The position numbers were made by a program, and so were the translations under genes. Shown piece after piece: positions 1 to 60,600 of a DNA stretch of 64,000 nt (position 1 is the stretch's first letter; each line of letters opens with the position of its first letter). The notes below the pieces were generated by a model. That model was not told the origin of the DNA and ran no database searches. It was given only the letters and a program-made list of their open reading frames with translations. Source of the DNA: Macrostomum lignano (taxonomy: Eukaryota); contig NIVC01002163.1 of NCBI GenBank assembly GCA_002269645.1, forward strand, positions 124,001 to 188,000. Direction: 5' to 3'.

Positions 1-400
1 GACACACCTGCAGGCTGTCCCCGATCTCCCCAACACCTGCAGGCTGTCCCCGATCTCCCCAGACGCACCTGCAGGCTGTCCCCGATCTCTCCAGACGCAC
101 CTGCAGGCTGCCCCCGATCTCCCCAGACGCACCTGCAGGCTGTCCCCGATCTCTCCAGACGCACCTGCAGGCTGCCCCCGATCTCCCCAGACACACCTGC
201 AGGCTGTCCCCGATCTCCCCAGACACACCTGCAGGCTGCCCCCGATCTCCCCAGACACACCTGCAGGCTGTCCCCGATCTCCCCAGACACACCTGCAGGC
301 TGTCCCCGATCTCCCCAGACACACCTGCAGGCTGCCCCCGATCTCCCCAGACACACCTGCAGGCTGTCCCCGATCTCCCCAGACACACCTGCAGGCTGTC
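1..400 (-). repeat. 32-bp tandem array (about 12 copies) whose unit is the last 12 nt of the kinase exon plus the first 20 nt of the intron
   Basis: Minus-strand unit GACAGCCTGCAG|GTGTGTCTGGGGAGATCGGG. Confidence 0.92.
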
Positions 401-2314
401 CAGGTCGCCCAGCTTGCAGTGCCAGTCAGCAGTGAGCAGCACGTTGGTGCTCTTCACATCCTGGTGCGCCAGGCTGAAGCTGCGCCAGTCGCCAGCCGCT
501 GCGGCTTCGACCTCCTGCCAGCTGTGCAGGAAGTCCAGGGCGCTGGCCAGCTCGTGCGCCATCCGGATTCGAACTCCGGCCAGCTGGAACTCGCAGGCGG
601 GCGGTGCCCGGCCGGCGGCGAAGTCGTCAATCAGCTGCCGCAGGTTGCCGGCCTCGCACAGCTCGTAGACCAGCAGGAGGTCGCCGCCCGCCGCCTCGCC
701 GCGGTGAGCGAAGCCGAGCAGCCACAGCAGCCGGGGATGGCGGAGGCCCGCCTGGCGCCGCAGCGCCTCCAGCGGGATGCCCGCAGAGTCGGGCAGCAGC
801 TTCTTGACGGCGACCGGCCGCCCTGCCAGGTTCACCCGGTACACGCGGCCGAAGCTGCCGGCTCCGAGCTCCTCGCCGACCGCGGCATCCAGCTCGGCGA
901 AGCTGAACTCCTGCAGCCCGGCCTCACCGTCCTCGGCCTCGGCCGCGGCCAGCAGCGTCTGCAGGCGGCCCCGCAGCACCGCGGCGGTGCACCTCTCGGC
1001 GAAGTTGTGCAGCAGGCAGGGCGCCACGGCTTCTCTGCAGACGCGGGCGTGCAGACCTGCGGACAGCCGCAGCCCCGGCTGAGGCGGCGGAGCCCGACCG
1101 TCGGCCAGGGCCCAGCAGAGCCAGGACTCCTCCGGAGTGTCGCTGCTGGCGGGCTGGCCGCGCAGGCCGGTGAGCAGCTCCAAGATGGTGACCCCGGTGC
1201 TGAAGACGTCCCACTTGCAGGTGACTCGGTCTTCGGGCGGCCGGTAGCCCAGCGTGTGCACTCTGGCCACCTGCTGGGCCCGCTGCTCACCCCAGACGGT
1301 CTGGCCGAGCCCTGCGGTGGTCAGGTCGAGGAAGTCCAGGTCGGCGAGGCGGCAGCGCCAGTCGCCGTCAACCAGGATGTTGCTGGGTTTCACATCCTTG
1401 TGCACGAAGCTGAAGCTGAGGAGGCCGGCCCGCTCGTCTCGCGCCATCGACTTCTCCTCGGTGGCGTGCAGGAACTCCACGGCCGAGGCGATGTCGGTTG
1501 CCATGCGGAGCCGCGTGCCGCCCAGGTGAAACCCGCTGGCCACCGCCTCCGCCGACGACCACCAGCTGTGGGGCTCGGCGAACCGGTCGAGCAGCTGGCG
1601 GAGGTCGCCGTTGCTGTGGAAGTCGAACACGGAGTACATGCGGTCGTCGGCGGGCGAGTAGCCGAAGCCGACCAGCCGAGCGATGCTCGGGTGCCGCAGG
1701 CCGCTGAGGGCGCCGATCGACCTGCGGATGGCCTGGCGCGCCTCCTCGCTGATGCCCGGTCGGTAGACCTTCACCGCGTGCTGCCGGCCTTCGACCAGCG
1801 CTGCCGTCCGGAAGACCTCGGCGAAGCCGCCCGAGCCGATCAGGGAGCCGCAGGCCACGGCGCGCCGGAGCTGCTCCGCCGGGAACTCCAGCGGCGAGTC
1901 GTCTGGTGGAAGCGGAGGCGGAGGCGCGGGCGGGGGCGGGGGCGGAAGAGACGGAGGGGGCGGCTCCGCAGTCGTGGGCGGAGGCTGCCAGGCCTGGTTC
2001 AGCAGGTTGGACCGCACGAAGGCCTCGGCTTCGCGAAGTCCCCGACGGCTCAGGACCTCCAGCAGCTCTTCAAGGCTGCAGCTGCGCTCCCACAGCAGCA
2101 GGGCGGCCGCGGCTTCTCCGCCAGGACTCTGGCAGACCAGCAGGGCCTGGTCGGCTGACAGAGGCCGGCCCTCAGAATCCAGGTAGTCTTCAACCAGAGC
2201 TCGCCAAGATTCGCCTTGCTGCAGCTTGCGGCCCAGGATGGCCCAGGTGGATGGGTAGCGAGCTCGCACCTGGTGCAGTCTGGTGCGCAGGTTCAGCGGC
2301 TGGCGGAGCGGCAT
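389..2314 (-). CDS. First coding exon (642 codons) of a death domain + Pro-rich linker + two tandem IRAK/Pelle-like kinase domains; gene continues beyond the left edge
   Basis: Manual minus-strand translation from ATG at 2314. MPLRQPLNLRTRLHQVRARYPSTWAILGRKLQQGESWRALVEDYL...SPGGEAAAALLLWERSCSLEELLEVLSRRGL is death-domain-like. Kinase 1: IGSGGFAEVF / HAVK / HKDVKPSN / LADLD / GYRPPE / KWDVFSTG. Kinase 2: QEFSFAEL / LGAGSFGRVY / VAVK / HQDVKSTN / LGDLD. Ends at a CAG|GTGTGT donor (388). Missing from the ORF track, apparently because the frame has no stop before the window edge. Confidence 0.9.
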
Positions 2315-3169
2315 GACGGCCTCTGCGATGCTTGCAGTTAGCTGAGAATTCACTGCTGAGATGAAGGCTGATATGAACTGCCTGCGCCTTCCGTCTTAGT
2401 GCTGCGCCCTGTGCGTATTGTACAGCTGGGGTAGAGTGTGCAGTGGGGTGCAGCTGGCGGTGTGCATTGACTGCCCGCCCTGCACTGCGCACAGGCTGTG
2501 CATCTGCTAAGTTTATTAGCAATCAGGGGTGGCTGGGTTGCTTCCTGTGAGTGTTTTGCCAAAGGTTGGTAAAAATTTAGAAGCAAACGACAAACCAATG
2601 TTTTTTTTGGCTGTTGATTCTTGCTTGTTTTAAACGCCAGCTACAAAGAGTAGACGTTGCATTTTTGGAACAGCAACTTCTCAAGTATTGAGCCTAATGA
2701 AATACGATGCTTTCACCCACAAGAAATCGATAATTTCACACTATAAATCGATAATTTCACACTCTGTAAATCGATAATTTCTGCTCTCTTCGATAGTTGC
2801 GGCATTTGGTTCGAGAGTGACGACATCATAGGGTGGAGGCTGCTGCTGCTGCTGCTGCGGCTCGCTCATGTTCTCAAGCTAGTAGTTGCCAACTATCACG
2901 CTCTACTTTAGATCGGGGATATTGCAGTCCACAATTTAGTCTAGAATATATGCGCTAGTAGATTCTGGCTGACGTCAACTAAATCCTGATAAAGAGGTCT
3001 GACAAACATCCTTATCAATATGCTTATCTGTCCAGTAGAACTACTCATGCTGTCCGCGGTGCCCCTCGCGAATAGCAATGCTCAGTTAATGTAGAATTTT
3101 CTTCAAGCAGGATGTGCAAAAGGGACAAAAGGTTTAATTGCACACTTGCTTCTATCTACTTATCGTTTC

Positions 3170-3840
3170 TCTTCCTCACTCCACCTCTCCTCTCACTCAC
3201 TCCACCTCTCCTCTCTCCCTCACTCCACCTCTCCTCTCACTCACTCCACCTCTCCTCTCTCCCTCACTCCACCTCTCCTCTCACTCACTCCACCTCTCCT
3301 CTCTCCCTCACTCCACCTCTTCTCTCACTCACTCCACCTCTCCTCTCTCCCTCGCTCCACGTCTCCTCTCACTCACTCCACCTCTCCTCTCTCCCTCGCT
3401 CCACGTCTCCTCTCACTCACTCCACCTCTCCTCTCACTCACTCCACCTCTCCTGTCTCCCTCGCTCCACCTCTCCTCTCACTCACTCCACCTCTCCTCTC
3501 TCCCTCGCTCCACGTCTCCTCTCACTCACTCCACCTCTCCTCTCACTCACTCCACCTCTCCTGTCTCCCTCGCTCCACCTCTCCTCTCACTCACTCCACC
3601 TCTCCTCTCACTCACTCCACCTCTCCTGTCTCCCTCGCTCCACCTCTCCTCTCACTCACTCCACCTCTCCTCTCTCCCTCGCTCCACCTCTCCTGTCTCC
3701 CTCGCTCCACCTCTCCTCTCACTCACTCCACCTCTCCTCTCTCCCTCGCTCCACGTCTCCTCTCACTCACTCCACCTCTCCTCTCACTCACTCCACCTCT
3801 CCTCTCTCCCTCGCCCCACCTCTCCTCTCTCCATCTCACT
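3170..3840. repeat. CT-rich minisatellite, 21/23-bp units (ctcactcactccacctctcct)
   Basis: Direct reading; generates the spurious ORFs at 3112-3960. Confidence 0.9.
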
Positions 3841-4189
3841 CGGTTTACGATTTCAAAGCACACTGTTCATTTACACTACATTTGCTTTGGCAAAGAAGCA
3901 GAAATACAGTTCGTCAAAGCGGTTAAGATAAATACATTGATAATGTTGACTGCACCTTAGGAATTTCTGTTTTTGTCACAGAAATTGCTTCTAAAAGCTT
4001 GAACAGCAGTGTTAGATAAGCAGCACAGCAGCACAGAGTGTACGATCTTTGCATGAAATTTACTTTTCTGTCATTTCAAAAAACACCCCGACTTCTGGCA
4101 TAAATTTATTAATATCAATACCTCAGCTTAGCGACTAACACTGTGCAACAGGATATTTCTGCTGGAGAGAATGGGTGAGCTGCTTTTGC

Positions 4190-5350
4190 TGATCTCATTA
4201 TACTCGCTGTCTTCTCATCTACTCTCGCTCTCATTCTCAGCTACTTTCGATCTCATTCTCATCTACTCTTAATATCATTCTCATCTACTCTCGCTCTCAT
4301 TCTCATCTAATCTTGATATCATTCTCATCTACTCTCGCTCTCATTCTCATCTACTCTCGCTCTCATTCTCATCTACTCTCGCTCTCATTCTCATCTACTC
4401 TCGCTCTCATTCTCAGCTACTCTCGATCTCATTCTCATCTACTCTTGATATCATTCTCATCTACTCTCGCTCTCATTCTCATCTACTCTTGATATCATTC
4501 TCATCTACTCTCGCTCTCATTCTCATCTACTCTCGCTCTCATTCTCATCTACTCTCGCTCTCATTCTCAGCTACTCTCGATCTCATTCTTATCATCTACT
4601 CTTGATATCATTCTCATCTACTCTCGCTCTCGTTTTCATCTACTCTCGCTCTCATTCTCATCTACTCTCGCTCTCGTTTTCATCTACTCTCGCTCTCATT
4701 CTCATCTACTCTCGCTCTCATTTTCATCTACTCTCGCTTTCGTTCTCATCTACTCTTGCTCTCATTCTCATCTACTCTCGCTCTTGTTCTCATCTACTCT
4801 CGCTCTCGTTTTCATCTACTCTCGCTCTCATTCTCATCTACTCTCGCTCTCATTCTCATCTACTCTCGCTCTCATTCTCATCTACTCTCGCTTTCGTTCT
4901 CATCTACTCTTGCTCTCATTCTCATCTACTCTCGCTCTCATTCTCATCTACTCTCGCTCTCATTCTCATCTACTCTTGCTCTCATTCTCATCTACTCTCG
5001 CTCTCATTCTCAGCTACTCTCGATCTCATTCTTATCATCTACTCTTGATATCATTCTCATCTACTCTCGCTCTCATTCTCATGTACTCTTGCTCTCATTC
5101 TCATCTACTCTCGCTCTCATTCTCATCTACTCTCGCTCTCATTCTCATCTACTCTCGCTCTCATTCTCATCTACTCTCGCTCTCATTTTCATCTACTCTC
5201 GCTCTCATTCTCATCTACTCTCGCTCTCATTCTCATCTACTCTTGCTCTCATTTTCATCTACTCTCGCTCTCATTCTCATCTACTCTTGCTCTCATTCTC
5301 ATCTACTCTTGCTCTCATTCTCATCTACTCTCGCTCTCATTCCCTTCTAC
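4190..5350. repeat. 22-bp minisatellite (ctactctcgctctcattctcat), probably intronic
   Basis: About 50 copies; starts just after a GTGAGC donor-like site near 4175. Confidence 0.9.
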
Positions 5351-5380
5351 TCATTACCGCTCGGATCCATCTTCACTCAG

Positions 5381-7493
<2,113 letters not shown>

Positions 7494-10175: not shown

Positions 10176-11609
10176 CGTTGGAGAGCGCTTTTCCTGCCTC
10201 TCATTGCAGACCCTTCTTGCACCTGCTCATGCAGCACTCCGTTTGTCCGACAATCCGTTTGCATATTTCATCGCGTATGCCTATTTTTCGGACTTCTCGA
10301 ACTGTAGGCACTGTGAAATTTATCGGCACAGTTACATTTTTAAACCAATTTTCATGTAGCTTGAGCCCATACTAGCTAAAAACCATTAATCAGGGGAATA
10401 TGGAGGGAAGATTCCTAAGCAAGGGATTAATTTGCTCACTAACCTAACTGTCAATAGAGGCCCAGAGACCAAAAAATTTAATAAAATTTGCTCAATACAC
10501 CGGAGGCTCGGTAGTGACCTGCAGTTCAAGAAGTCCGTTTTTTCGTTTTTCAAATTTTGAAGTCCAACTCCGCCCCAGTTTTTTTTAGTTGCGACGTCAA
10601 ATTTGAAATAAATGGAGTTGTATTTACAAGTAGAAATTGTTTTTAGCTGAATTTTCACGTGAAGTTCAGAATACTATTTTTGGACCTTCGAGAACAGGTA
10701 CCCGAAGCTGGGGCAAAAAAGATTTGCATCTTTCATCAATGAAAAGCAAATCTGTAAAAGATTTCGAGCTCAGCTGCAGGAAAATAAGATAATGGACCAA
10801 AATCGTCTGCATCGAAATTTTTCTATTAATTTGGTCCCAGCTGCCGCTGCGATTTTCGCAATTATCCGCAGAGAATCTGCACCAACTAAACATTTATCAA
10901 AGCCGATAATTGGGGAAAATTTTCCCAACTAGAGGTGTTTTGAGCTGCCGCTACTCAAGATAATTGGCTGGTCATGAAGCCATCTGTGCTCAAAGAGAGC
11001 AGCAGCAGGTGCTCAGGTGGCTCTCGCCAAATTGCATTTTTGCTTCCTGCAGGTGCGTCATCGCGGCAGAGGAATTGAAGCTTCACCTTTGCTCCGAATG
11101 CACGAGGCGGATCTGAGGTGGTTCAGCTTTGAAGCGTTTTGTACGGAAGTTCCGGGAGGACAGAGAATTTCATTTTTTCCGACGTTGTTCCTGTCTCTTT
11201 AGTGCATCTTTATTCAGCGCTTGCTGCACTTCTGCCTGTCACTCTGTAATTGAACAGTTCCACAGTAAACATTAGCAAGTTGTCTGTCAAGAAAATTTGG
11301 TCTGAAAGCAGTTTTCAGAAAGCAAGTTGTTGAGCTGAAAAGTGCACATTGAATGCTGCTGCAAGACAGTTTAAAACCTGTAGGAATTCTCAACCAAACT
11401 TCGCTGCAATGGTCTTTTTGCGGTTTGGTGCGAAAACTTCAATCCAAAAATATTGCTGCAATTATCGCACAAAGGAAACACTGGCATGCCACGGAGTGGC
11501 GTGACGCAAGTAAGATTTTTTGACGTCAGGGTGTCTTCATGGATTTTATGGTTGGGGGGACAAAGCCAAGAATTCTACATACATGTGCACTTTTTTGAGA
11601 ATCGGTGTT

Positions 11610-12030
11610 GTTAACGCTCATTTTGGCGTCGCAGGCACTCATTGTGGCGCTGTAGACACTCATTTTGGCGCCGCAGGCACTCATTTTGGCGCTGCAGGCA
11701 CTCATTTTGGCGTCGCAGGCACTCATTTTGGCGCCGCAAGCACTCATTTTGGCGCCGCAAGCACTCATTTTGGCGCCGCAAGCACTCGTTCTGGAGCCGC
11801 GGGCACTCATTTTGGCGCCGCAAGCACTCATTTTGGCGCTGCAGGCACTCATTTTGGTGCCGAAGACTCTAATTTGGCGCCGCAGGAACTCATTTTGGCG
11901 CCGCAAGCACTCATTTTGGCGCTGCAGGCACTTATTTTGGCGCCGCAAGCACTCATTTTGGCGCTGCAGGCACTTATTTTGGCGCCGCAAGCACTCATTT
12001 TGGCGCTGCAGGCACTCATTTTGGTGCCGA
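11610..12030. repeat. 21-bp minisatellite (cactcattttggcgccgcagg)
   Basis: About 20 copies. Confidence 0.92.
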
Positions 12031-12169
12031 AGACTCACTTTGGTACCCTGAAGCAAAGTTATTTTTTTCCTCAACGGGTCACAAGATGGGATGGGGGACA
12101 AAGCATTGGCATGTCCCCCAAAGCATTTACGGGGGACATGTCCCCCCTCCGGTGGCGCGTGAAACGGTG

Positions 12170-21714: not shown

Positions 21715-23816
21715 ATGGATCGGCAGGCCAAGATTGACAAGCTGAAGGCTCAGGTGGACTCGATTCGCATTGGAGGCAAAGGATCCGCCCGCCGCAAGAA
21801 GAAGGTTATTCACAAGAACAATGCTACTGACGAGCGCAAGGTCACCACAACTTTAAAGAAGCTGGCAGTCAGCTCCATACCGGGCATCGAGGAGGTCAAC
21901 ATGTTCAAGGACAGCGGCGAAGTGATCCACTTCAACAATCCGAAAGTGCAGGCCTCGCTGCAGTCCAACACTTTCGCCATTAGTGGCCAGTCTGAGGTTA
22001 AGAATCTGACCGAGCTGCTGCCCAGCATCTGGAATCAGCTGGGCCCAGAGAACTTTGCTAACTTAAAGAAGCTGGCTACGAAATTTGGTGAGTGAACGAT
22101 CCCGATCCTGAAGTGAATGACCCCGATCATGAAGGGAATGATCCCGATCCTGAAGTGAATGATCCCGATCCTGAAGTGAATGACCCCGATCCTGAAGTGA
22201 ATGATCCCGATCCTGAAGTGAATGATCCCGATCATGAAGTGAATGATCCCGATCTTGAAGTGAATGATCCCGATCCTGAAGTGAATGATCCCGATCATGA
22301 AGTGAATGATTCCGATTATGAAGTGATTGATCCCGATCATCAAGTGAATGATCCCGATCATCAAGTGAATGGTCCCGATTATGAAGTGAACAATCCCGAT
22401 TCTCAAGTGAATGGTCCCTAGCATAAAGTGAATAATCCCGATTCTGATGTGAATGGTCCCGATCATGAAGTGAATAATACCGATTCTTAAGTGAATGGTC
22501 CCGATAATGAAATGAATAATTCCGATTCTAAAGTGAATGATCCCGATCATGAAGTGAGTAATCCCGACTCTGAAGTGAATGGTCCCGATTATGAAGTGAA
22601 CAATCCCGATTCTCAAGTGAATGGTCCCTAGCATAAAGTGAATAATCCCGATTCTGATGTGAATGGTCCCGATCATAAAGTGAATAATGCCGATTCTTAA
22701 GTGAATGGTCCCGATCATGAAGTGAATAATGCCGATTCTAAAGTGAATGGTCCCGATCATGAAGTGAGTAATCCCGACTCTGAAGTGAGTAATCCCGACT
22801 CTGAAGTGAATGGTCCCGATACTGATGTGAATGGTCCCGAGCATAAAGTGAATAATCCAGACTCTGAAGTGAATGGTCCCGATACTGAAGTGAATAATCC
22901 TCCGATTCTCAGGTGAATGGTCCCGATACTGACGTGGATGATCCCGATACTGAAGGGAATGATCCCGATACTGAAGGGAATGATCCCGATACTGAAGTGA
23001 ATAATCCCCCGATTCTCAAGTGAATGGTCCCGATACTGAAGTGAATGATCCCGATACTGAAGTGAATGATCCCGATACTGAAGTGAATAATCCCCCGATT
23101 CTCAAGTGAATGGTCCCGATACTGAAGTGAATGATCCCGATACTGAAGTGAATGATCCCGATACTGAAGTGAATAATCCCCCGATTCTCAAGTGAATGGT
23201 CCCGATACTGAAGTGAATGATCCCGATACTGAAGTGAATGATCCCGATACTGAAGGGAATGATCCCGATACTGAAGGGAATGATCCCGATACTGAAGTGA
23301 ATGATCCCGATACTGAAGTGAATGATCCCGATTCTCAAGTGAATGGTCCCGATCATGAAGTGAGTAATCCCGACTCTGAAGTGAGTAATCCCGACTCTGA
23401 AGTGAATGGTCCCGATACTGAAGTGAATAATCCTCCGATTCTCAGGTGAATGGTCCCGATACTGACGTGGATGATCCCGATACTGAAGGGAATTATCCCG
23501 ATACTGAAGTGAATAATCCCCCGATTCTCAAGTGAATGGTCCCGATACTGAAGTGAATGATCCCGATACTGAAGTGAATGATCCCGATACTGAAGGGAAT
23601 GATCCCGATACTGAAGTGAATGATCCCGATACTGAAGGGAATGATCCCTTCAAACCCGTGAATGAAACCCGTGCTTCTGCAGGCTCTGGTGCTCCGAAAG
23701 CCGACGGTGAGGCCGGCGACGAATCGGCAGTCGGTGCTGGCCCGGCCGCCGCCGACGAGGACGATGTACCGGAGTTGGTTGGCAACTTTGACGGATCCTC
23801 AGCCAAGGCCGAATAA
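21715..23816 (+). CDS. BTF3: Nascent polypeptide-associated complex beta / transcription factor BTF3, 168 aa; exons 21715-22087 and 23683-23816
   Basis: [16 protein letters not shown]...[37 protein letters not shown]...[13 protein letters not shown]; phase-1 GTGAGT...TTCTGCAG intron. Confidence 0.97.
22095..23650. repeat. 21-bp minisatellite (gtgaatgatcccgatactgaa) filling nearly the whole BTF3 intron
   Basis: About 70 copies starting at the donor. Confidence 0.95.
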
Positions 23817-33742: not shown

Positions 33743-36700
33743 TCAGTTATCTCGATTGGCTGATGCACCTGGCTGCAGCAGGGGCGTGTTAAATGGATTC
33801 TGTCGCTCCCAGACGACCATCGATTCAGAGTTTGTCTCTCCAGCTGTCTGCTGCTGTTGCTGAAAATCCACTCCCCTGTACTTGATCTCGTCCGACTCGT
33901 CGTTAAGTCGACAGTTAAGCTTCAACGTCTCGGATCCGTCTTCGACCTTCACCAGATCGCTGAAGACCACCTTGTGACTGGGCGACCTTTCGCAGGAGGA
34001 GGATTTCAATCGGCGCTGATGTTGCTGGTGCAGCTGGTGAAACATGGCGTGCTGCTGCTGCAGCTGCTGATGATGCCGCTGCTGATGTCCGGGTTCTGGG
34101 GAGACAGCTGTGGCGATTGCATCTGCGGAAGAATGTCGAGCCCTCGACGGTAAATTGCCGCCGTTAGAATCCGCCTTGAGCTGGTCTACTCTGGAGCCCA
34201 ACTGGTGCTGCGGCTGGTGCTGGACTGGCCGGTTGGTGCTACCGGCGGGCTCCTGGGATTGAAGAGGAGGGTTGAGTTACTGGACTGAATCGAGTCTATA
34301 CCGACTGCGTACTAAATTAGCTGGTTGCTTGCTTACCGTAGCCTGCAAATTGTTTGACTTTGGCTCCAATGGTTTTGTTTGAGGCGACTTTTCCTTCTGG
34401 TTTTGTTGCGGCTGCTGCTGCTGCTGGCTAGTTTCCTGCAGCATTGCTTCTGTGCAGGTAGCACTGGAAATTTGGAGCAAATGTGTAGGAAGGTTAGCTC
34501 TACTGATAAAATTGAGGGACATCGCTGATTGGCTGCAAGGATTTAGCATGGGTGGGAGTGTCTGCAAGTGGGACATCGCTGATTGGCTGATAGGATTTAG
34601 GATGAGTGGGGTGTCTGCAAGAGGGACATCGCTGATTGGCTGCAAGGATTTAGCATAGGGTGGAACAGTTCTCAGTGGCCCGAGGGGCGGTGAGAATTTA
34701 CAGTACATCCTGTCAGTATCAATCCTCACCGCTTAACCGTCTCCATAGCAACCTCCAGGCAGTTACTGCGCCTTTTCGCGTCCTCCAGCGCCTGGCGCGC
34801 CGAGTCCCGCAGCCTGGCATAGCTGTCAATCTGCGCCCGCCGCTGCTCGAGTCTCTCCTCAACGGCCAGCTCGATCTCCGAGTGCATCAGCGACTCGTGG
34901 CTGGCCAGCATGGTCTGTACGATCTTCAGCCTGGCCGAGACGCTCTCGATGAATTCCTTGGAATCGGTCGGTCCCCTCTCACCAGACAATAGTCCGGCCT
35001 CCAAGTTGGCGAGGAGGGCACTGATCTCCTTCTGCTGCTCAGTGAACTCCTTGTAGGCTTCCGATAGACCATCATCGTCGCTTAGCGACTCGACAAATTT
35101 TCCATTAGCGAGATCGTTGATGCGCTTCTGTGGTTGGTAGGGGGTCGCAGAATAGGATCACGTGCTAACCAGGCCGTTAGGGTCTCTGTGGCATCGCTGA
35201 TTGGCTGAGAGCTTTTCCGTGGGGTAAGAAAAATTAAGGGAGAGAGTTGGGCGGCAGTGCTGATTGGCTGCGCGCATGGGTTAAGGTGGATTGTCGGATT
35301 CTGGTTGGCTTTCGCGGGCAAGGCGGCGTAAAAAAAGCTGCTTACCTCGATGTCGACCCGAAAGGCGGCAAATTCAGCACCTAATCGGGCGGCGCTGTCG
35401 CGTGCTTCTCCAACGCCGGCGTCGACAGTCTGGCGACTGCGCGCCACCGCCTGCTGCAGGGCTCGCAGGCCGCAGATGAGGCCAGCGTTTTGCGGCGGCT
35501 GGTACGGCACCGCGGTCTCCGTGCTGGCGGCAGCTGAGGAGGCTAATAATGCAGTGTGGGTGAATATGGGCTTTAGTTTCTGAATTTCGATGGCATGATT
35601 CTTGTTGGCATTGTTCTTACAGAAGCGCGCAACTCCACGCGCAACTATTCTTCTTGCTTCTATTTAACCTTTTTCGGCACGCAATGCGCGCTCGCACTAC
35701 TCACGTCGAGTAGTTTTCGCCTCACCGCTCTTGGTAGAAAATGCGCTGTCCAGACTGCTCTCGCTTGGCGCGTGGCAGCCGCCGCTTTGAACAGCTGGTT
35801 GCTGAGGCTGCGCCATTGTCCAGCCGGCTGAAGACACAGGCGACGGGCCCTGTGAGTGCCGTTGCGGCGGCGGCGGCGGCGGCAGCTGATGTCGGTGCCC
35901 CGCCGGCGTTGCCTCGACTCGGGCGGCTGCAGAGAAGAGAATAATAAAGAGAGTTAAACACGGTTTGTAGTGAGCGTCATTCAAGCGCTAAATTATCGAT
36001 TATTTGCACTGGCTTATTTGCACTGCTAGAGCTATCCATGCTCCAGAGTAGTGAAGGTGAGCAGCAATCCAGGATTCCGGTTCCTCTGCCGCTGGATCGA
36101 TTGTCGCTGTTAGCTCCTCTCGCGTTGCTGTCAGCTCGCTCGCTCACTCACTCACGCATCACTCAGAGCAAATCTCCGTTCCGAGCGCTGTCTGCTGCGC
36201 GCCTTCTTCATTTCCCGGCAAGAGAGGAAGAAGACAGACAAGCAGGCCGCACTGGCTACTCAACAAGTCTTGGACACTTCTCCCCCCCCCCTCACAGTTG
36301 TTGGCATCTTAGCTTTCTCGTGTGCTGTGACTAATTTAGTGTAAAAATAAATCTTTTTCCATTCCCCGCTCGGGCCCGAGCAAATCCTGCGACCTCTTAT
36401 TCTCACCCTGGACGGTCTGGTCTTGCCGGGACGGAGACGGAATTCGCCTCTCTGACGATCTGCCCTTGTCGGGACTGAGAGGGAATTCCCCTGTCCATCT
36501 GCTCTTGCCGGGACTGAGAGGGAATTCCTTTGTCTATCTGCTCTTGTCGGGACTGAGAGGGAATTCCCCTGTCTATCTGCTCTTGCCGGGACTAAGAGGG
36601 AATTCCCCTGTCTATCTGCTCTTGTCGGGACTAAGAGGGAATTCCCCTGTCTATCTGCTCTTGTCGGGACTAAGAGGGAATTCCCCTGTCTATCTGCCCT

Positions 36701-39700
36701 TATCGGGACTGAGAGGGAATTCCCCTGTCTATCTGCCCTTGTCGGGACTGAGAGGGAATTCCCCTGTCTATCTGCCCTTGTCGGGACTGAGAGGGAATTC
36801 CCCTGTCTATCTGCCCTTGTCGGGACTGAGAGGGAATTCCCCTGTCTATCTGCCCTTGTCGGGACTGAGAGGGAATTCCCCTGTCTATCTGCCCTTGTCG
36901 GGACTGAGAGGGAATTCCCCTGTCTATCTGCCCTTGTCGGGACTGAGAGGGAATTCCCTTGTCGGGACTGAGAGGGAATTCCCCTGTCTATCTGGTCTTG
37001 TCGGGACTGAGAGGGAATTCCCCTGTCTATCTGCTCTTGTCGGGACTGAGAGGGAATTCCCCTGTCTATCTGCCCTTGTCGGGACTGAGAGGGAATTCCC
37101 CTGTCTATCTGCCCTTGTCGGGACTGAGAGGGAATTCCCCTGTCTATCTGCCCTTGTCGGGACTGAGAGGGAATTACCCTGTCTATCTGCCCTTGTCGGG
37201 ACTGAGAGGGAATTACCCTGTCTATCTGCCCTTGTCGGGACTGAGAGGGAATTCCCCTGTCTATCTGCCCTTGTCGGGACTGAGAGGGAATTCCCCTGTC
37301 TATCTGCCCTTGTCGGGACTGAGAGGGAATTCCCCTGTCTATCTGCCCTTGTCGGGACTGAGAGGGAATTCCCCTGTCTATCTGCCCTTGTCGGGACTGA
37401 GAGGGAATTCCCTTGTCGGGACTGAGAGGGAATTCCCCTGTCTATCTGGTCTTGTCGGGACTGAGAGGGAATTCCCCCTGTCTATCTGCTCTTGTCGGGA
37501 CTGAGAGGGAATTCCCCTGTCTATCTGCCCTTGTCGGGACTGAGAGGGAATTCCCCTGTCTATCTGCCCTTGTCGGGACTGAGAGGGAATTCCCCTGTCT
37601 ATCTGCCCTTGTCGGGACTGAGAGGGAATTACCCTGTCTATCTGCCCTTGTCGGGACTGAGAGGGAATTCCCCTGTCTATCTGCCCTTGTCGGGACTGAG
37701 AGGGAATTCCCCTGTCTATCTGCCCTTGTCGGGACTGAGAGGGAATTCCCCTGTCTATCTGCCCTTGTCGGGACTGAGAGGGAATTCCCTTGTCGGGACT
37801 GAGAGGGAATTCCCCTGTCTATCTGCTCTTGTCGGGACTGAGAGGGAATTCCCTTGTCTATCTGCCCTTGTCGGGACTGAGAGGGAATTCCCCTCCCTGC
37901 CTGCTTTGGCAAGCCGAGAAGGCGGTTTTTATTCCAACACAAGATTTTTTTGCCCCCCCCTCATCGTCTGTCTTGCTTGTGAAACTTTTGCGTCAGCTGC
38001 CCTGCGCCGCTGCTAAATCCCCTGCCTCTTCAGAGGCCCCCGGTCAAATCCCATTATTAGTCAGGCCGCAGGACAGCGGAGGACGCAGTGAGGGGGGGGG
38101 GGAATCCCCGCAGTGGCTGCCATCCTGGTGGCTGCTCGGCCTCTGTGTTGTTCGGCAATTTTTCCCGTGTCTTCTACGCAGCCACCGCCGCTGCGTATAA
38201 GGGATGCCTGAGGCGCCCCAACCGCGCAACGCCGTGGGGATTACAACTGAGGGGATTCGAAGATTCGCGCCCCATCACCGCTACGAGAGCCGGCGCGTTA
38301 GGGATTTTACTATCCCCGAGCCGCGCTGCTCTGTAGGGATTGGGAATTTAATCAGCCAGACTGATCATTGCCAGTCCTTTACTCGATTTGGAAACTGCGC
38401 CCTGATCCCCTGTCCCAGTCTGAGCACTTCCCCTGTTGGTACCGCGGGGTTCTGTTAGCTCTTCTGCACTTTGGCATTGTATGAATAGGATCTATTATCC
38501 CCTAGATCTACGATCCCCTAGACTTATAACCCTCTAGATCTATAATCCTCTAGATCTATGATCCCCTAGATCTATGATCCCCTAGATCTATGATCCCCTA
38601 GATCTACGATCCCCTAGATCTGTCATCCCCTAGATCTATGATCCCCTTAGATCTATGATCCTCTAGATCTATAATCCTCTAGATCTATGATCCTCTAGAT
38701 CTATGATCCTCTAGATCTACGATCCCCTAGATCTACGATCCCCTAGATCTATGATTCCCTAGATCTATGATCCCCTAGACTTATGAACCTCTATATCCAT
38801 GATCCCCTAGATCTATGACCCCCAGATCTGTGATCCCCTAAATCTATGATCCTCTAGATCTATGATCCTCTTGATCTATAATCCCCTAAATCTATGATCC
38901 TCTAGATCTATGATCCTCTTGATCTATAATCCCCTAAATCTATGATCCTCTAGATCTATGATCCTCTTGATCTATAATCCCCTAAATCTATGATCCTCTA
39001 GATCTATAATCCTCTTAATATCTATTAAATCTATAATCCCCAAGATTAAACTTCTAGATGTATAATCCCCAAGATCGGATACTAGATCTCTATTCTACTA
39101 GATCTAAATAAATCAGCTGATCTCTTACTCATCGCACTGGCTGTCATCATTGCCTGTGGCTGCGCCGGCGGAGGTGGCGGCGGCGGTGGAGGCGGCGGCG
39201 GTGGACAAGTGCAGGTGCACACGGGTGCAGGATGGCGCAACTGGAATCTCGGGTCGGGAAGCTCAGACATGGCCACGAAACCGGCTGAGTCGTAGCTTCT
39301 TGAGCAGTCGAAATCCTGCTGAGGTGGCTCCAAAATTTTCAGCAGGCAGTTGGGTCGAATGTCTCTGAAAGCACAGGGTTGTTTATAGACGGTCAGCTCT
39401 GGGATCTAATGACAGTCAGCTTTGGGATCTAATGACAGTCAGCTTTGGGATCTAATGACAGTCAGCTTTGGGATCTAATGACAGTCAGCTTTGGGATCTA
39501 ATGACAGTCAGCTCTGGGATCTAATGACAGTCAGCTTTGGGATCTAATGACAGTCAGCTTTGGGATCTAATGACAGTCAGCTTTGGGATCTAGTGACAGT
39601 CAGCTTTGGGATCTAGTGACAGTCAGCTTTGGGATCTAATGACAGTCAGCTCTGGGATCTAATGACAGTCAGCTCTGGGATCTAATGACAGTCAGCTTTG

Positions 39701-42700
39701 GGATCTAGTGACAGTCAGCTTTGGGATCTAATGACAGTCAGCTCTGGGATCTAATGACAGTCAGCTCTGGGATCTAATGACAGTCAGCTTTGGGATCTAA
39801 TGACAGTCAGCTTTGGGATCTAATGACAGTCAGCTTTGGGATCTAGTGACAGTCGGCTTTCGGATCGAACGACAGTAAGCTTTGGGATCGAACGACAGTC
39901 AGCTTTGGGATCTGAAGGAGATTAACGGTCAGTTTAGGGATCTGAAGGAGATTAACGGTCAGTTCAGGGATCTGAAGGAGATTAACGGTCAGTTTAGGGA
40001 TCTGAAGGAGATTAACGGTCTTTTAAGAGATCTGAAGGAGATTAACGGTCAGTTCAGGGATCTGAAGGAGATTAACGGTCAGTTTAGGGATCTGAAGGAG
40101 ATTAACGGTCAGTTTAGGGATCTGAAGGAGATTAACGGTCAGTTTTAGGATCTGAAGGAGATTGACAGTCTGTTTAGGCAGGGATCTGGAGGAGATTAAC
40201 GGTCGGTTTGAGGATCTTTCAGCCTGTCATGTTTCATAATTATGTCTGGCATTCATGTTTTGCAGCTGACAGACAAGCAATGTGCAGATATGATATGCGC
40301 ACAGCACCCTCGGGTTATGCACTAAATTATGGATAAAGTTTGCAGACTGACCGAATATCCTCCAGCTCGTAGAAGACGTCGCGACAAAGCTTGTCCTGAA
40401 TGTACACCCGCCGCTGGGGGTTCTCGGCGAACCACTGGATTCCCGTGATCCATTGTGGAAACGCTCTGGCGAACAGGGATTTAACGGAGTCGACTGCCGC
40501 CAGCTTGCCCGGCTGCTGGACCCGCCTGACGTTATCGCGAAAGATGAGGAACAGCGGACCTGGACGGAGGGAGGAGGGTTCGAACTGGAGTCCCGCCCAT
40601 CAATCATGCCGATGGCGGATGGCTTGCAGCTGGGGTGGTCGATTTCTCCCTACTTGGGTGGGAGCCGCGAGGGAGTCTGTGACTGTGAATTTTATATAAA
40701 AGCATAACCTACTCGAATGTTGTTCAACTTGTTTGTTGCAAGTAGGGGTGTTCGGGGTTCGGGGTCGGGTCGGGTTTCGGGTCGGGTTTTGGTACCGGGT
40801 TCGGGGTTCGGGGTAGGTGTTCCGGGTCGGGTTCGGGGTTCGGGGTAGGGGTACCGGGTTCGGGGTTCGGGTCGGGTTTGGCCACCGGGTTTTCGGGGTT
40901 TTCGGGGTTTTGAACAATATCATTCTCAAGAGTATTTTCAAGCACTTTTTTACTCCTTATGCAAAATCCACAATGCGAAAGATATGCATTGAGTTTCAGG
41001 TACAACTTAAGTTATATTTTACATACAATTTGAAACAGAAATAGCAGATAGAACCATGGATTCATTTACACTTTCTGGTAAATAACGATTGTCGTTTTTC
41101 GACCCATTCAGTATTGCAGTTGATGATTTAAAAAATTACGTTCAGTAATAATTTTACATGTGCTACGTGTAACATGGTCTGAACTTCTGGATTGGATGAG
41201 GAAGCTAAAAATTTATAAATACACTATTATTCTCCACGCATCAGTCGCCAATAATCAATTATCACAATGATTACCTACTCATATCAGCATACAATTTTAT
41301 GTAAAGACGTCACTTTAGTTTTTACATAGCAATTCTGTTATACCACTACTGACTTACTGTTAACTGTAATCAAAAGTAAAAATATATATATATTTGTGAT
41401 TAACTCTCCTGTTTCATTGTTTCATTGTTTTATCTGTGCTATCTCTTTATCGCTCTAGTTCTATCTCTACTGATATCTACACTACAGGGTATAATCTAAT
41501 TTTATTGTACTCTATTTTTGCAGCTTAAATAAACTCATAGATGTAATATTACTATGAAAGCAATTTCGTTGTAAGTATAGGTACGAAATGGTCCTGATTT
41601 TAGTTGTGACCTTTCATGTATCTTACTATTAGATCTTGGGTCTTGGTATTCCTTCCATCTCAATCCCAATCCCATTGCAAGAAGTGTTTCATATTTCTTT
41701 TCCTAGTTGTAGAGTAGCTAAGGGAAATAAAACCACAAGGCTAAGTGGTTGAAGCTGTTAAGGCACATCTCAATATATAAAACTGAATTTAAAACTGAAA
41801 TTCAAAACTGAAAACTGAAAAATTGAAAACTGAAAACTGAATTTATTAAAATGATTGACCAAAATAAGCGTGAAAATGTTCGGGGTTACGTTCGGGGTCG
41901 GGTCGGGTTTTGGTACCGGGTTCGGGGTTCGGGGTTGGAAGAAATGTTCGGGACGGGGTTCGGGGTTCGGGGTAGGGGTACCGGGTTCGGGGTAAACCCC
42001 GAACCCCGAAAAAATGGCCGACCCGAACACCCCTAGTTGCAAGGCATTTAGGAAGCACTTTTCCAGCATTTTTGCCAGACAGAAGTCCAATTTGTGATCT
42101 AGAAGTCTGATTCCGTGATCTAGAAGTCTCATTCTATGTTCTAGAAGTCTGATTCCGTGATCTAGAAGTCTGATTCCGTGATCTAGAAGTCTGATTCCGT
42201 GATCTAGAATTCTCATGATTCCGTGATCTAGAAGTCTCATTCTATGATCTAGAAGTCTGATTCCGTGATCTAGAAGTCTCATGATTCCGTGATCTAGAAG
42301 TCTCATTCTATGATCTAGAAGTCTGATTCTATGATCTAGAAGTCTCATTCTATGATCTAGAAGTCTCATTCTATGATCTAGAAGTCTCATTCTATGATCT
42401 AGAAGTCTGATTCTATGATCTAGAAGTCTCATTCTATGATCTAGAAGTCTCATTCTATGATCTAGAAGTCTCATTCTTTAATCTAGAAGTCTCATTCTAT
42501 GATCTAGAAGTCTCATTCTATGATCTAGAAGTCTCATTCCATGGTCTAGAAGTCTCATTCCATGGTCTAGAAGTCTCATTCCATGGTCTAGAAGTCTCAT
42601 TCTGTCATTAGAAGAACATATAGATCACAAAAAAATTTACGACTGGAGAGACGGTGTAGTAAAGAGTCAATAAGCACGCAATATACTTATTAATCAATGG

Positions 42701-44548
42701 CTGGTCTCAGCGCATTTGGATTTGCCACCAGCCACTGATCCCCCCCTCCCCAACTCACCGCTGGCAGCCGATTTCGAGCTTTTAATCCGTCGAATAGCGA
42801 ACAGGCTCAGGCCGCTTTTGCCGCCGGCTTTGCCAGTCGCCGCCTTGTCTGGCAGTTCGTGCATGTTGCCCAGGCTGCCTGCCATTGGCAGATCGCCGTA
42901 GCAGTGCCTGCCGTCTGCCAGGCCCTGTTCAGTGTTTGAGCAATCAGATTTGACAGAAATTTTTGCTCTTCTCTGAAGCGAAATTTTTAAACACAATTAA
43001 AAGACTGATAAAATAAGCAGGTTTGCTGAAGTTCGCCAGGTTGCTTCCTGACTGACTCTTCCCCGTCCTGACACTTCCTAGTCCTGACACTTTCCAATCC
43101 TGACACTTCCCGTCCTGACACTTCTAGTCCTGACACTTCCCAATTCTGACACTTCCCAATCCTGACACTTCCCAGTCTTGACACTTCCTAGTCCTGACAC
43201 TTGCCAGTCCTGACACTTCCTAGTCCTGACACTTCCCCGTCCTGACACTTCTAGTCCTGACACTTCCCAATCCTGACACTTCCCCGTCCTGAACATTCCC
43301 CGTCCTGACACTTCTAGTCCTGACACTTTCCAGTCCTGACCCTTCCCAGTCCTGACACTTCCCCGTCCTGACACTTCCTAGTCCTGACCCTTCCCCGTCC
43401 TGACACTTCCTAGTCCTGACACTTCCCCGTCCTGACACTTCCTAGTCCTGACACTTCCCCGTCCTGACACTTCCCCGTCCTGACACTTCTAGTCCTGACA
43501 CTTTCCAGTCCTGACACTTCCCAGTCCTGACACTTCCTAATCCTGACACTTCCCAGTCCTGACACTTCCACGTCCTGACACTTCCTAGTCCTGACACTTC
43601 CCCGTCCTGACACTTCCTAGTCCTGACACTTCCCCGTCCTGACTCTTCCCCGTCCTGACACTTCTAGTCCTGACACTTTCCAATCCTGACACTTCCCAAT
43701 TCTGACACTTCGCAGTCCTGACACTTCCCAATCCTGACACCTCCCAGTCCTGACACTTCCCAGTCCTGACACTTCCTAGTCCTGACACTTCCTAGTCCTG
43801 ACACTTCCCCGTCCTGACACTTCCTAGTCCTGACACTTCCCCGTCCTGACACTTCCTAGTCCTGACACTTCCCCGTCCTGACACTTCCTAGTCCTGACAC
43901 TTCCCCGTCCTGACACTTCCTAGTCCTGACACTTCCTAGTCCTGACACTTCCTCGTCCTGACACTTCCTAATAAATCTGACAAATCCAATCCTGACGCTT
44001 CCCAATTCTGACACTTCTCAATCCTGACACTTCCCAATCCTGACACTTCCCAGTCCTGACACTTCCCAATCCTGACACTTCCCAGTCCTGACACTTCCCA
44101 ATCCTGACACTTCCCAATCCTGACACTTCCCAGTCCTGACACTTTCTAGTCCTGACACTTCCTAGTCCTGACACTTTCTGACGTTCTCGCAAAGAAGAAA
44201 TTCTTCCTGTTGTGAACTATTAAATTTCAATTTTTCCCATTCTTAAGAGTGGTCAAGTCTCAGTGGCAATTTTTTTCGGCCACCTCCCCAGACTCTCCGC
44301 CTCACCCGTCCTCTCTGAGCTGAGTAGCTGCTGAGCAGCGGACTCGCTGGGGTGCTGCCGGTGCTGCCGCCTGCCGTCAGCCGCTCCCGCCAGCCACCGC
44401 CGCCGTTCCCGAAGCTTCCTCCGTAGCCGCAGGCGGCGTCCTCTGAAGTGACGGAGCCGGACCTTGCTGACCGCGGACCCGCCGGCGCCGCCGCCGTGAG
44501 GTTCCGGTGCTGCCCAGTCCGACCGGAAGAAGACGGATCCTGCAGTTC
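33743..44548 (-). CDS. AIP3-domain coiled-coil protein, SRCIN1 (p140Cap)/KIAA1217-like; exons 44548-44306, 42924-42759, 40559-40352, 39364-39129, 35926-35726, 35533-35346, 35127-34730, 34463-34337, 34252-33743 (759 codons, N-terminus further upstream)
   Basis: All eight introns are GT-AG with consistent phases. GPLFLIFRDNVRRVQQPGKLAAVDSVKSLFARAFPQ...RRVYIQDKLCRDVFYELEDIRDIRPNCLLKI resembles, from memory, the GVLFLQY...LFVSAFPQ...YIKD...YYEL.DVR.I..RSLLK block of p140Cap/KIAA1217, followed by Pro-rich and coiled-coil segments. Confidence 0.85.
36445..37890. repeat. 39-bp intronic minisatellite with internal palindrome GGGAATTCCC (about 37 copies)
   Basis: ttgtcgggactgagagggaattcccctgtctatctgccc; no spacers. 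Confidence 0.95.
38480..39100. repeat. 15-16-bp intronic minisatellite (tagatctatgatcccc)
   Basis: Direct reading. Confidence 0.9.
39395..40200. repeat. Adjacent related arrays: 23-bp (gggatctaatgacagtcagcttt) then 30-bp (gggatctgaaggagattaacggtcagttta)
   Basis: Direct reading; together they fill most of intron 39365-40351. Confidence 0.92.
40743..42035. mobile_element. Non-autonomous hAT-type DNA transposon (1293 bp) in an intron
   Basis: TIR TAGGGGTGTTCGG / CCGAACACCCCTA; perfect 8-bp TSD GTTGCAAG (40735-40742, 42036-42043); subterminal TTCGGGG repeats. Confidence 0.9.
42095..42600. repeat. 21-bp minisatellite (gatctagaagtctcattctat)
   Basis: Direct reading. Confidence 0.92.
43060..44175. 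repeat. 15/16-bp minisatellite (tcctgacacttcc[c/t]ag)
   Basis: Direct reading. Confidence 0.93.
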
Positions 44549-50069: not shown

Positions 50070-51790
50070 GGGGGAGGGGAGATGAGAGGCAGAGGGGAAG
50101 AGAGGAGACAGGCAGAGATGAGAGAGGCAGAGAGAGGAGATGAGAAAGGCAAAGAGGGGAGATGAGAGAGTTAGAGAGGGGAAATGAGAGAGGCAGAGTG
50201 GAAATATGAGAGATGAGAGAGGGGAGATGAGAGGCAGAGAGGGGATATGAGAGATGAGAGAGGCAGAGGCAGAGAGGAGATATGAGAGATGAGAGAGGCA
50301 GAGGCAGAGAGGGGATATGAGAGATGAGAGAGGCAGAGAGGCAGAGAGGGGGGAGATGAGAGGCAGAGAGGGGAGATGAGAGAGGCAGAGAGGGGAGATG
50401 AGAGAGGCAGAGAGGGGAGATGAGAGGCAGAGAAAAGAGATGAGAGGCAGAGAGGGGAGATCTGAGAGGCAGAGAGGGGAGATGAGAGAGGCAGAGAGGG
50501 GAGATGAGAGGCAGAGAGGGGAGATGGGAGGCAGAGAGGGGAGATAAGAGAGGCAGAGAGGGGAGATGAGAGGCAGAGAGGGGAGATGAGAGAGGCAGAG
50601 AGGGGAGATGAGAGAGGCAGAGAGGGAAGATGAGAGAGGCAGAGAGGGGAGATGAGAGGCAGAGAGGGGAGATGGGAGGCAGAGAGGGGAGATAAGAGAG
50701 GCAGAGAGGGGAGATGAGAGGCAGAGAGGGGAGATGAGAGAGGCAGAGAGGGGAGATGAGAGAGGCAGAGAGGGGAGATGAGAGAGGCAGAGAGGGGAGA
50801 TGAGAGAGGCAGAGAGGGGAGATGGGAGGCAGAGAGGGGAGATAAGAGAGGCAGAGAGGGGAGATGAGAGGCAGAGAGGGGAGATAAGAGAGGCAGAGAG
50901 GGGAGATAAGAGAGGCAGAGAGGGGAGATGAGAGGCAGAGAGGGGAGATGAGAGAGGCAGAGAGGGGAGATGAGAGAGGCAGAGAGGGGAGATGAGAGAG
51001 GCAGAGAGGGGAGATGAGAGGCAGAGAGGGGAGATGGGAGGCAGAGAGGGGAGATAAGAGAGGCAGAGAGGGGAGATGAGAGGCAGAGAGGGGAGATAAG
51101 AGAGGCAGAGAGGGGAGATGAGAGAGGCAGGGAGGGGAGATGAGAGAGGCAGAGAGGGGAGATGAGAGAGGCAGAGAGGGGAGATGAGAGAGGCAGAGAG
51201 GGGAGATGAGAGAGGCAGAGAGGGGAGATGAGAGAGGCAGAGAGGGGAGATGAGAGGCAGAGAGGGGAGATGGGAGGCAGAGAGGGGAGATAAGAGAGGC
51301 AGAGAGGGGAGATGAGAGGCAGAGAGGGGAGATAAGAGAGGCAGAGAGGGGAGATGAGAGAGGCAGGGAGGGGAGATGAGAGAGGCAGAGAGGGGAGATG
51401 AGAGAGGCAGAGAGGGGAGATGAGAGAGGCAGAGAGGGGAGATGAGAGAGGCAGAGAGGGGAGATGGGAGGCAGAGAGGGGAGATGAGAGGCAGAGAGGG
51501 GAGATGAGAGAGGCAGAGAGGGGAGATGAGAGAGGCAGAGAGGGGAGATGAGAGAGGCAGAGAGGGGAGATGAGAGAGGCAGAGAGGGGAGATGACAGAG
51601 GCAGAGAGGGGAGATGAGAGAGGCAGAGAGGGGAGATGGGAGGCAGAGAGGGGAGATGAGAGGCAGAGAGGGGAGATGAGAGAGGCAGAGAGGGGAGATG
51701 AGAGAGGCAGAGAGGGGAGATGAGAGAGGCAGAGAGGGGAGATGACAGAGGCAGAGAGGGGAGATGAGAGAGGCAGAGAGGGGATATGAC
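50070..51790. repeat. 20/22-bp purine-rich minisatellite (gagaggcagagaggggagatga)
   Basis: Direct reading; source of the 700-aa spurious ORFs. Confidence 0.95.
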
Positions 51791-60500: not shown

Positions 60501-60600
60501 GATGGGGTCAGAGGGCGATTCTCTTATGGGGTCAGAGGGCGACTCTCATGGGGTCAGAGGGAGACTCTCAGATGGGGTCAGAGGGCGACTCTCATATGGG
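57553..60600. repeat. 24-bp minisatellite, about 127 copies (atggggtcagagggcgactctcag)
   Basis: Direct reading; source of the 1024- and 966-aa spurious ORFs. Confidence 0.97.

Follow-up and report, generated by a model that had tools for sequence, protein, structure and literature searches.

In this work we have analysed a stretch of 64,000 nucleotides (hereafter the window) from the flatworm Macrostomum lignano (GenBank assembly GCA_002269645.1, contig NIVC01002163.1, positions 124,001 to 188,000 of the forward strand), one end of which carries on its minus strand the beginning of a protein kinase gene. We read window positions 389-2314 as exon 1 of a paralogue of the M. lignano gene BOX15_Mlig022961g1. 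Judged from its sequence, the complete product is probably a soluble protein of about 786 aa, in which a helical N-terminus and a flexible proline-rich linker precede two kinase domains, K1 and K2, that stem from an internal duplication. These domains would belong, as very divergent members, to the IRAK and receptor-like kinase (RLK)/Pelle branch of the tyrosine kinase-like (TKL) group or be closely related to it, and the protein would act in the manner of an IRAK. Taken as a whole, this reading has in our estimate a probability of about 0.6.

The frame is open without interruption for 642 codons, from the ATG at 2314-2312 to base 389, as the original prediction had it, and none of 5000 composition-preserving shuffles stayed open over that length. 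The G+C content of this region is 67-79 % (71 % overall). An in-frame stop codon lies about 100 nt 5΄ of the ATG, and the next methionine comes only at M226. The frame does not close at codon 642 (...GDLDSLQ); it continues through a 32-bp tandem repeat to the window edge, which is why it is missing from the open reading frame (ORF) lists. That it is absent from the ORF track had been pointed out correctly, and the cause is thus trivial. A GT splice donor (388-387, CAG/GTGTGT) directly follows codon 642. Since an intron cuts K2 after DLDSLQ, this domain is incomplete within the window; its remaining 144 aa lie on exon 2, outside the window, as seen in a second genomic copy, L001, and in the deposited proteins P0001 and P0024. 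Intron 1 of L001 (11261-11836, 576 bp) contains the same 32-bp repeat and ends in the acceptor ...ccatcag/ACGGCC. Reading the 642-aa translation by eye, we saw neither a signal peptide nor a transmembrane segment.

The 32-bp repeat occupies window positions 1-401 in 12.6 copies, and the window ends inside the array. Its unit spans the last 13 nt of the exon together with the splice donor (GACAGCCTGCAG/GTGTGT), so that about 12 copies of the donor site are present; the counterpart of the array in L001 lies at 11248-11592. The array does not interrupt the kinase frame, as three units add up to 96 bp. A 579-aa antisense ORF (419-2158, plus strand) and several overlapping ORFs of 80-150 aa were considered as genes and rejected as by-products of the 71 % G+C.

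Our results show that two consecutive kinase domains are present in one polypeptide, as had been claimed. Pfam Pkinase (PF00069) matches the translation in two stretches with an E-value of 1.5e-31 and 110.2 bits (the curated cut-off is 31.7 bits), and PK_Tyr_Ser-Thr (PF07714) reaches 98.4 bits; with exon 2 included, K2 runs from residue 456 to about 786. The polyproline linker and the motifs quoted in the original prediction are all in their places. The juxta-kinase motifs EFPAEQL (residues 143-149, K1) and EFSFAEL (469-475, K2) align with EFSYEEL of the plant kinase CERK1, LRHPSIARLVGFG is found at residues 206-218 of K1 and LRHPRLLWLLGF at residues 524-535 of K2, and the catalytic loops read HKDVKPSN (305-312, K1) and HQDVKSTN (617-624, K2), both of the non-RD type. 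Further along K1 one finds the G-loop GSGGFA, K182, the gatekeeper F230, H305-K-D307, N312, D325-L-D327 and GYRPPE, and along K2 the G-loop GAGSFG, K504, the gatekeeper Y550 (in LVYEL), H617-Q-D619, N624 and D637-L-D639.

Both domains therefore keep the ATP-anchoring lysine, the catalytic aspartate, the asparagine and the metal-binding aspartate (D325 and D637). K1 has lost the glutamate of helix αC, replaced by serine, and the third glycine of the G-loop, replaced by alanine, while in K2 the αC glutamate is shifted by one residue. On the basis of these residues K1 appears more degenerate than K2, and of the two it would be the better candidate for a pseudokinase and K2 for an enzyme. In K1 and K2 alike, DLD stands in place of DFG and is followed by an insertion of 8-10 residues (DLDFLDLTTAGLG and DLDSLQTATAGSGL), a combination that could leave both domains catalytically dead and that speaks against an active signalling kinase. 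A second insertion, of 12-16 residues, separates helix E from the catalytic loop in both domains. K1 and K2 are 36 % identical in a BLASTP alignment and 37.5 % identical in a trimmed alignment, which is more than either shares with any other kinase tested, and in a neighbour-joining tree they are sisters with 100 % bootstrap. As they are each other's nearest relatives and share derived insertions, we conclude that they arose by an internal duplication specific to the flatworm lineage.

Where do these domains belong among the kinases? In HMMER comparisons with the PDB, the best match of K1 was CERK1 (1.1e-15), followed by FLS2, SYMRK and BRI1, and that of K2 was again CERK1 (1.2e-13), followed by a lectin-RLK and FLS2. 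In the neighbour-joining tree, whose human reference kinases were sequences entered by hand, K1 and K2 join the IRAK/RLK clade at its base, apart from RIPK2, TAK1, TGFBR1, BRAF and SRC, and do not nest in any plant clade sampled. Among the hallmarks of the IRAK family, which comprise an N-terminal death domain, a proline-rich linker, a tyrosine gatekeeper and, in the Pelle/IRAK1 group, non-RD status (PMC3498205), the proline-rich linker, the gatekeeper (Y550 in K2; K1 has F230) and the non-RD status are matched; the single kinase domain per polypeptide that is characteristic of IRAK/Pelle proteins is not, as there are two here. The IRAK/RLK-type features noted at the outset are thus real: an xFSxxEL motif, the tyrosine gatekeeper of K2 and non-RD loops are present, and the best matches are plant RLKs, a TKL/IRAK kinase of Capsaspora and a tick IRAK4. 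Two results weigh against a firm assignment to this family. IRAK4 itself matches both domains at about 2e-9, a value that PknB, BRAF and DDR1 equal or surpass, and the bootstrap value for K1 and K2 inside the IRAK/RLK clade is 25 %, which makes the proposed phylogenetic grouping with IRAK/Pelle a weak one.

We searched 1.84 billion representative proteins exhaustively; among the best 150 matches, only two proteins reached E<1e-30, namely the gene's own paralogue (P0001) and P0027, a protein of 1069 aa in which a short kinase segment is repeated in 15 near-identical copies. The next matches, at about 1e-27, included multi-kinase plant models and the 'TKL/IRAK protein kinase' KJE90737.1 of Capsaspora owczarzaki (P0029), which ranked fourth (E 5e-27, 34 % identity across the matched stretches) and contains leucine-rich repeats and three kinase domains. 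The architecture of KJE90737.1 implies that multi-kinase proteins of IRAK type exist in Holozoa outside plants. IRAK4 of the tick Dermacentor (XP_037577740.1, P0140) was also within the best 150. No orthologue was found among the 1.84 billion representative proteins, and the literature yielded no published description of the gene identifier, of a Macrostomum IRAK, MyD88 or death domain, or of an invertebrate IRAK with two kinase domains. The statement that the protein has no described counterpart in animals therefore agrees with both the literature and the protein searches.

The part of the frame that lies upstream of the kinases has to be considered on its own, since the first 142 codons alone would be open by chance in 7.9 % of shuffles. 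These codons might be an untranslated, fortuitously open G+C-rich 5΄ leader, with the protein beginning at M226 as in the deposited model PAA94098.1. No database homologue of the N-terminus is known to set against this explanation: in a collection of 5.8 billion proteins, a word-indexed search with and without the linker found no protein containing it, not even a self-match, from which it follows that no deposited proteome includes the N-terminus, a result that also counts against the architecture as we read it. With a start at M226, however, K1 would lose its G-loop, the strand with Lys182 and its helix C, three elements that upstream of that residue are intact and of kinase type; without M1 no start codon would serve them. 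Codons 1-110 show, moreover, the periodicity of coding DNA, with G+C contents of 0.755, 0.482 and 0.773 at the first, second and third codon positions, while the other two frames contain three stops each. The G+C content steps up from 0.52 upstream to 0.67 exactly at the ATG. Finally, all three substitutions that distinguish codons 1-110 among the three genomic copies are synonymous third-position changes, whereas about 12 substitutions have accumulated among the copies in the 245 bp upstream of the gene. On these grounds we judge that the N-terminal codons probably are coding, and we consider a leader that ends at M226 very improbable.

The original prediction had described this N-terminus as death-fold-like. 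That was an interpretation rather than an observation, for what can be recognized is a segment of about 110 aa that is predicted to be all-helical, with six or seven helices; the prediction places seven, at residues 9-19, 21-32, 37-42, 54-60, 66-75, 81-90 and 94-104, where the death fold is an antiparallel bundle of six. The direct tests give no confirmation of a death fold. No Pfam family, Death and Death_2 included, matched the N-terminus at E<=10, while the death domains of MyD88, IRAK1, FADD, RIPK1, TNFR1 and Fas, used as controls, scored between 1e-14 and 1e-24; the human IRAK4 death domain itself reaches only 22.0 bits (the Pfam cut-off is 22.6), so this test is not very sensitive for the IRAK4 subtype. 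Nor did phmmer find any PDB match at E<=10. A hidden Markov model built from seven death domains (sequences entered by hand, each confirmed by Pfam, with IRAK4 identical to PDB 8dks) gave the N-terminus 3.1 bits, which ranks 178th against 5000 shuffles (p about 0.04). With hhalign the N-terminus reached E 0.33 against the death-domain profile, to be compared with <=7e-3 for true death domains in leave-one-out runs, and E 0.062 against a mini-profile of IRAK4 type. AlphaFold2 models built from the single sequence and from an alignment with the tick death domain had predicted local distance difference test (pLDDT) values of 53.5 and 51.1 and predicted template modelling (pTM) scores of 0.31 and 0.34; at a pLDDT of 51-53 they are unusable. 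In Foldseek comparisons of both models with the PDB nothing appeared below E=5, and the death domains of Pelle and IRAK4 stood at the insignificant ranks 5 and 9.

One line of evidence points the other way. Among the 149 proteins from the kinase search, the best match of the N-terminus is the tick IRAK4, which is the sole one with a Pfam death domain (Death_2, residues 20-124, 1.3e-7). The match is collinear, joining residues 30-108 of the flatworm protein to residues 37-123 of the tick protein, and weak (E 0.018 in the 149-protein set); in both proteins the matched segment precedes a polyproline stretch and then a kinase. The reverse phmmer comparison gave 11.8 bits, a score that none of 5000 shuffles attained (maximum 10.1), and MAFFT aligned the two segments at 30-32 % identity with both tryptophans in register. 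When the tick death domain was compared with the six-frame translation of the window, the N-terminus ranked first, with an E-value of 0.17 that does not favour homology. A transitive test from the N-terminus through the tick to the human IRAK4 death domain gave z 4.9 and was rejected, since the signal was lost on a re-alignment control: 87 of 400 re-aligned shuffles and 10 of 67 natural TPR decoys reached the real score. The death fold thus failed in Pfam, PDB, profile, hhalign, AlphaFold2 and Foldseek comparisons and is left with the weak tick match. Where the segment sits in the protein, and the family to which the kinases point, make a death domain more likely a priori, but direct tests do not confirm one, and we put the odds that residues 1-110 are a diverged death domain of IRAK4/Tube type at roughly even.

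The tandem-kinase part of the protein is already known, in the sense that it has been deposited as unnamed, truncated, automatically generated models, and to call the whole protein hidden was an overstatement. The nearest protein, the M. lignano hypothetical protein BOX15_Mlig022961g1 (P0001, PAA94098.1, 564 aa), is 99 % identical; it begins at M226 of the window protein and after SLQ adds 144 residues (TATAGSGLTRMEDRPQ...EPDLEN). In every public model at least residues 1-173 are missing. Two further contigs of the same assembly, with 98.5 % and 97.4 % nucleotide identity to the window, carry copies of the gene: L001, to which the deposited model P0001 belongs, and L002. These two are syntenic with each other across ±8 kb, whereas their homology to the window is limited to positions 51-2556, and the window therefore holds a different paralogue. 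The UniProt fragments P0024 and P0026 carry the variants of the window type, in that they lack an RQV insertion and have W531 (P0024 also has W599), so the window copy is represented in older assemblies as well. The insertion in question is an in-frame 9-bp one found in L001 (10759-10767) and L002 (9673-9681), which read AAVRQVGEE where the window has AAVGEE (at 882).

In the search for genome paralogues, then, two further copies came to light, and in neither of them is the N-terminus fused in frame to the kinases. The proline tract, at about position 1946 of the window, is longer by 5 bp in L001 (9690-9694) and by 11 bp in L002 (8599-8609), which puts the N-terminal frame out of phase with the kinase frame in both, and in L002 a base is additionally missing at codon 351 (window 1264, L002 9290); these lesions argue against a protein that is translated as one unit. 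The out-of-phase linkers explain why the public models start at M226. Splicing does not appear to rescue the frame: a pyrimidine-rich GT...CAG candidate, of 55 nt in L001 and 50 nt in the window, was picked out by eye, and its removal leaves the kinase frame unrestored. The frame of L001 would be regained with one extra C in a GCCCCG run; other parts of the tract have GCCCCCG.

Such findings would be expected if the gene were a duplicate in decay, restricted to this lineage, within a genome of hidden polyploidy. Translation would then not normally join the N-terminal ORF to the kinases, both domains would be degenerate pseudokinases, the locus would have little or no function, and the intact 642-codon frame of the window would belong to one surviving or mis-assembled copy. 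Besides the indels in the linker and the additional deletion at codon 351, decay would account for the truncation of every public gene model, for the change from DFG to DLD in both domains together with the missing αC glutamate of K1, for the want of an orthologue anywhere else, and for the absence of the N-terminus from the predicted proteomes and the transcript-derived proteins in the collection. Against it stand the substitutions among the copies, which in the folded domains amount to eight synonymous and three non-synonymous changes, also between the frameshifted L001 and L002, an excess that argues for continuing purifying selection. The catalytic lysine, aspartate and asparagine and the metal-binding aspartate are, in addition, kept in both domains, the frame of the window copy is unbroken over its 642 codons, and the frameshifts in the linker sit in a C-rich, low-complexity tract of a PacBio-era assembly, where a single missing C would suffice to produce one. 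Decay is therefore an unlikely explanation in our view. We lean to assembly error or recent lesions as the origin of the frameshifts, because C-rich tracts are prone to long-read miscalls and because the copies look constrained.

The coordinates of the gene and of the main repeat arrays are collected in Table 1. Directly upstream of the gene, positions 2699-7223 consist almost entirely of minisatellites and microsatellites; the homology to the other copies ends at 2556, just before them. A 16-bp satellite (CTGACACTTCCCAGTC, about 70 copies) occupies 43052-44176, and arrays about 80 % similar to it lie downstream of the paralogues (L001 13941-14571, L002 13178-13773); it is the sole other sequence common to the window and the two contigs. 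From 8000 to 56700 there are many minisatellite arrays with periods of 15-42 bp, and the G+C content swings from 0.24 to 0.60; the eight longest ORFs tested in this region contain no credible Pfam domain. A purine-rich 22-bp satellite at 50074-51789 (AGAGAGGCAGAGAGGGGAGATG, 79 copies) has a GC skew of +0.79 and an AT skew of +0.65 and gives rise to spurious minus-strand ORFs of 700 aa. Further on, a 24-bp satellite of 128 copies (57541-60610, 95 % matches) is open in three forward frames, and an ORF of 1024 aa at 57554-60628, which has no Pfam match, was rejected as an artefact of it.

Table 1. Parts of the putative tandem-kinase gene and selected repeat arrays, in window coordinates.
Feature	Position	Strand	Remarks
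Start codon	2312..2314	-	Context GCCGTCATGC; sole Met upstream of the K1 N-lobe
N-terminal domain, codons 1-110	1985..2314	-	Predicted all-helical; Trp37 and Trp75
Proline-rich linker, codons 111-142	1889..1984	-	QPPPTTAEPPPPSLPPPPPPAPPPPLPP at residues 110-137; C-rich low-complexity tract
Kinase domain 1 (K1), codons 143-455	950..1888	-	Pfam, motifs
Kinase domain 2 (K2), exon-1 part, codons 456-642	389..949	-	Pfam, motifs
Start of intron 1	1..388	-	GT donor 388-387, then 32-bp tandem repeat to window end
44-bp CT-rich units	3168-3841		
22-bp unit x52	4203-5352		
(TCTG)n x76	5717-6019		
27-bp unit	6504-7211		
Example minisatellite arrays	11617-12043, 22091-23648, 36422-37894, 38489-40217, 42081-42614, 55624-56644		

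How does this protein compare with systems that have been described? In IRAK4, Tube-like kinase and Pelle the order of parts is the same, with a helical N-terminus of about 100 aa, a proline-rich linker, an xFxxxEL motif and a serine/threonine kinase of TKL type; K2 shares the tyrosine gatekeeper of the family, the non-RD loop is that of Pelle and IRAK1, and the kinase domain of Dermacentor IRAK4 is 31 % identical to K2 in the trimmed alignment. In contrast to the IRAK family, the flatworm protein has two kinase domains instead of one, DLD and an insertion in place of DFG, and the insertion before the catalytic loop; it matches no Death or Death_2 profile, and its orthology to the family cannot be demonstrated. 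With the JAKs, in which the pseudokinase JH2 precedes the kinase JH1, it has in common the presence of two tandem kinase folds in an animal protein and the proposed regulation by the degenerate one. The JAKs are, however, tyrosine kinases of a different group, with N-terminal FERM and SH2 domains, and we found no affinity in sequence: no JAK was among the 60 best PDB matches of either K1 or K2. The Capsaspora protein KJE90737.1 is, like the flatworm protein, a non-plant holozoan protein with several IRAK-like kinase domains in tandem, but it carries N-terminal leucine-rich repeats and three kinases, and its domains cluster together and not with K1 and K2.

The plant tandem kinases RPG1, WTK1/Yr15 and WTK3 likewise consist of two kinase domains of RLK/Pelle type without a receptor ectodomain; in tandem kinases of the RPG1 type the pair also comes from an internal duplication, and in plants too one domain is the more degenerate. 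The flatworm protein differs from them in its animal host and its independent origin, K1 and K2 being sisters that fall outside the plant subfamilies sampled, and in the additional N-terminal helical domain, which has not been described in RPG1, WTK1/Yr15 or WTK3. The plant proteins descend from plant RLK/RLCK subfamilies (WAK, LRR_8B, RLCK and others). The flatworm protein is best classed with the IRAK/RLK-like kinases, as a form whose kinase domain has been duplicated internally and which is known so far from M. lignano only.

We propose that the protein would work as IRAK kinases do, which are recruited to adaptors of MyD88/Tube type through death-domain interactions. By this analogy the N-terminal domain, most plausibly a highly diverged death domain of IRAK4/Tube type, would mediate oligomerisation or recruit the protein to an oligomeric adaptor complex, where proximity would activate it. 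Catalysis and signalling would more probably be the work of K2, and K1 may serve as a regulatory or scaffolding pseudokinase, as happens in JAKs and in many plant tandem kinases. An immune function is speculation. Helminths have been reported to lack the IRAK family and TRAF6 (PMC4484250), and the canonical partners may be missing here as well if that statement extends to a free-living flatworm.

A more specific alternative, close to the original prediction, is that of a genuine innate-immune sensor or transducer, composed of a death domain and a tandem kinase-pseudokinase pair and functionally convergent with the plant tandem-kinase resistance proteins. Signalling would fall to one kinase-like domain, the other would serve as a decoy or regulator, and the death domain would provide output or input by oligomerisation. 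The architecture on which this alternative builds is real, K1 is more degenerate than K2, both domains belong to the non-RD class that includes Pelle, PIK-1 and IRAK1/2/M (PMC3498205), and plant tandem kinases are themselves polyphyletic products of duplication and fusion of RLK/Pelle kinases (PMC8761531); the weak match to the tick IRAK4 death domain fits it too. It requires, though, a death fold that is unproven, and the gene exists in a few near-identical homeologous copies, without the expansion or diversification of a family that is typical of immune receptors; the substitutions among the copies are mostly synonymous and thus give no sign of diversifying selection. For these reasons we consider a sensor of this kind improbable, and we would hold with great reserve the still bolder idea that in a basal flatworm a protein of the IRAK lineage has independently reinvented the plant tandem-kinase layout, with a diverged death domain that couples to an adaptor and with K1 as sensor, decoy or regulator of an active non-RD K2. 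If it were true, the tandem kinase-pseudokinase logic of innate immunity would operate in animals as well as in plants.

The importance of the IRAK-like kinase that we favour is limited by the missing orthologue, the unproven death fold and the uncertain frame in the sister copies. RNA interference and transgenesis are available in M. lignano. In the IRAK/Pelle kinases that have been compared (PMC3498205, and the tick IRAK4) a single kinase stands behind the death domain, and the RLK/Pelle tandem kinases found in our literature searches are all plant resistance proteins. If expressed as we read it, the M. lignano gene would correct the public models that start at M226 and so lack the whole N-terminal domain and linker as well as the K1 N-lobe, and it would offer a tractable case of kinase-pseudokinase regulation in the IRAK lineage and a new architecture for the animal kinome.

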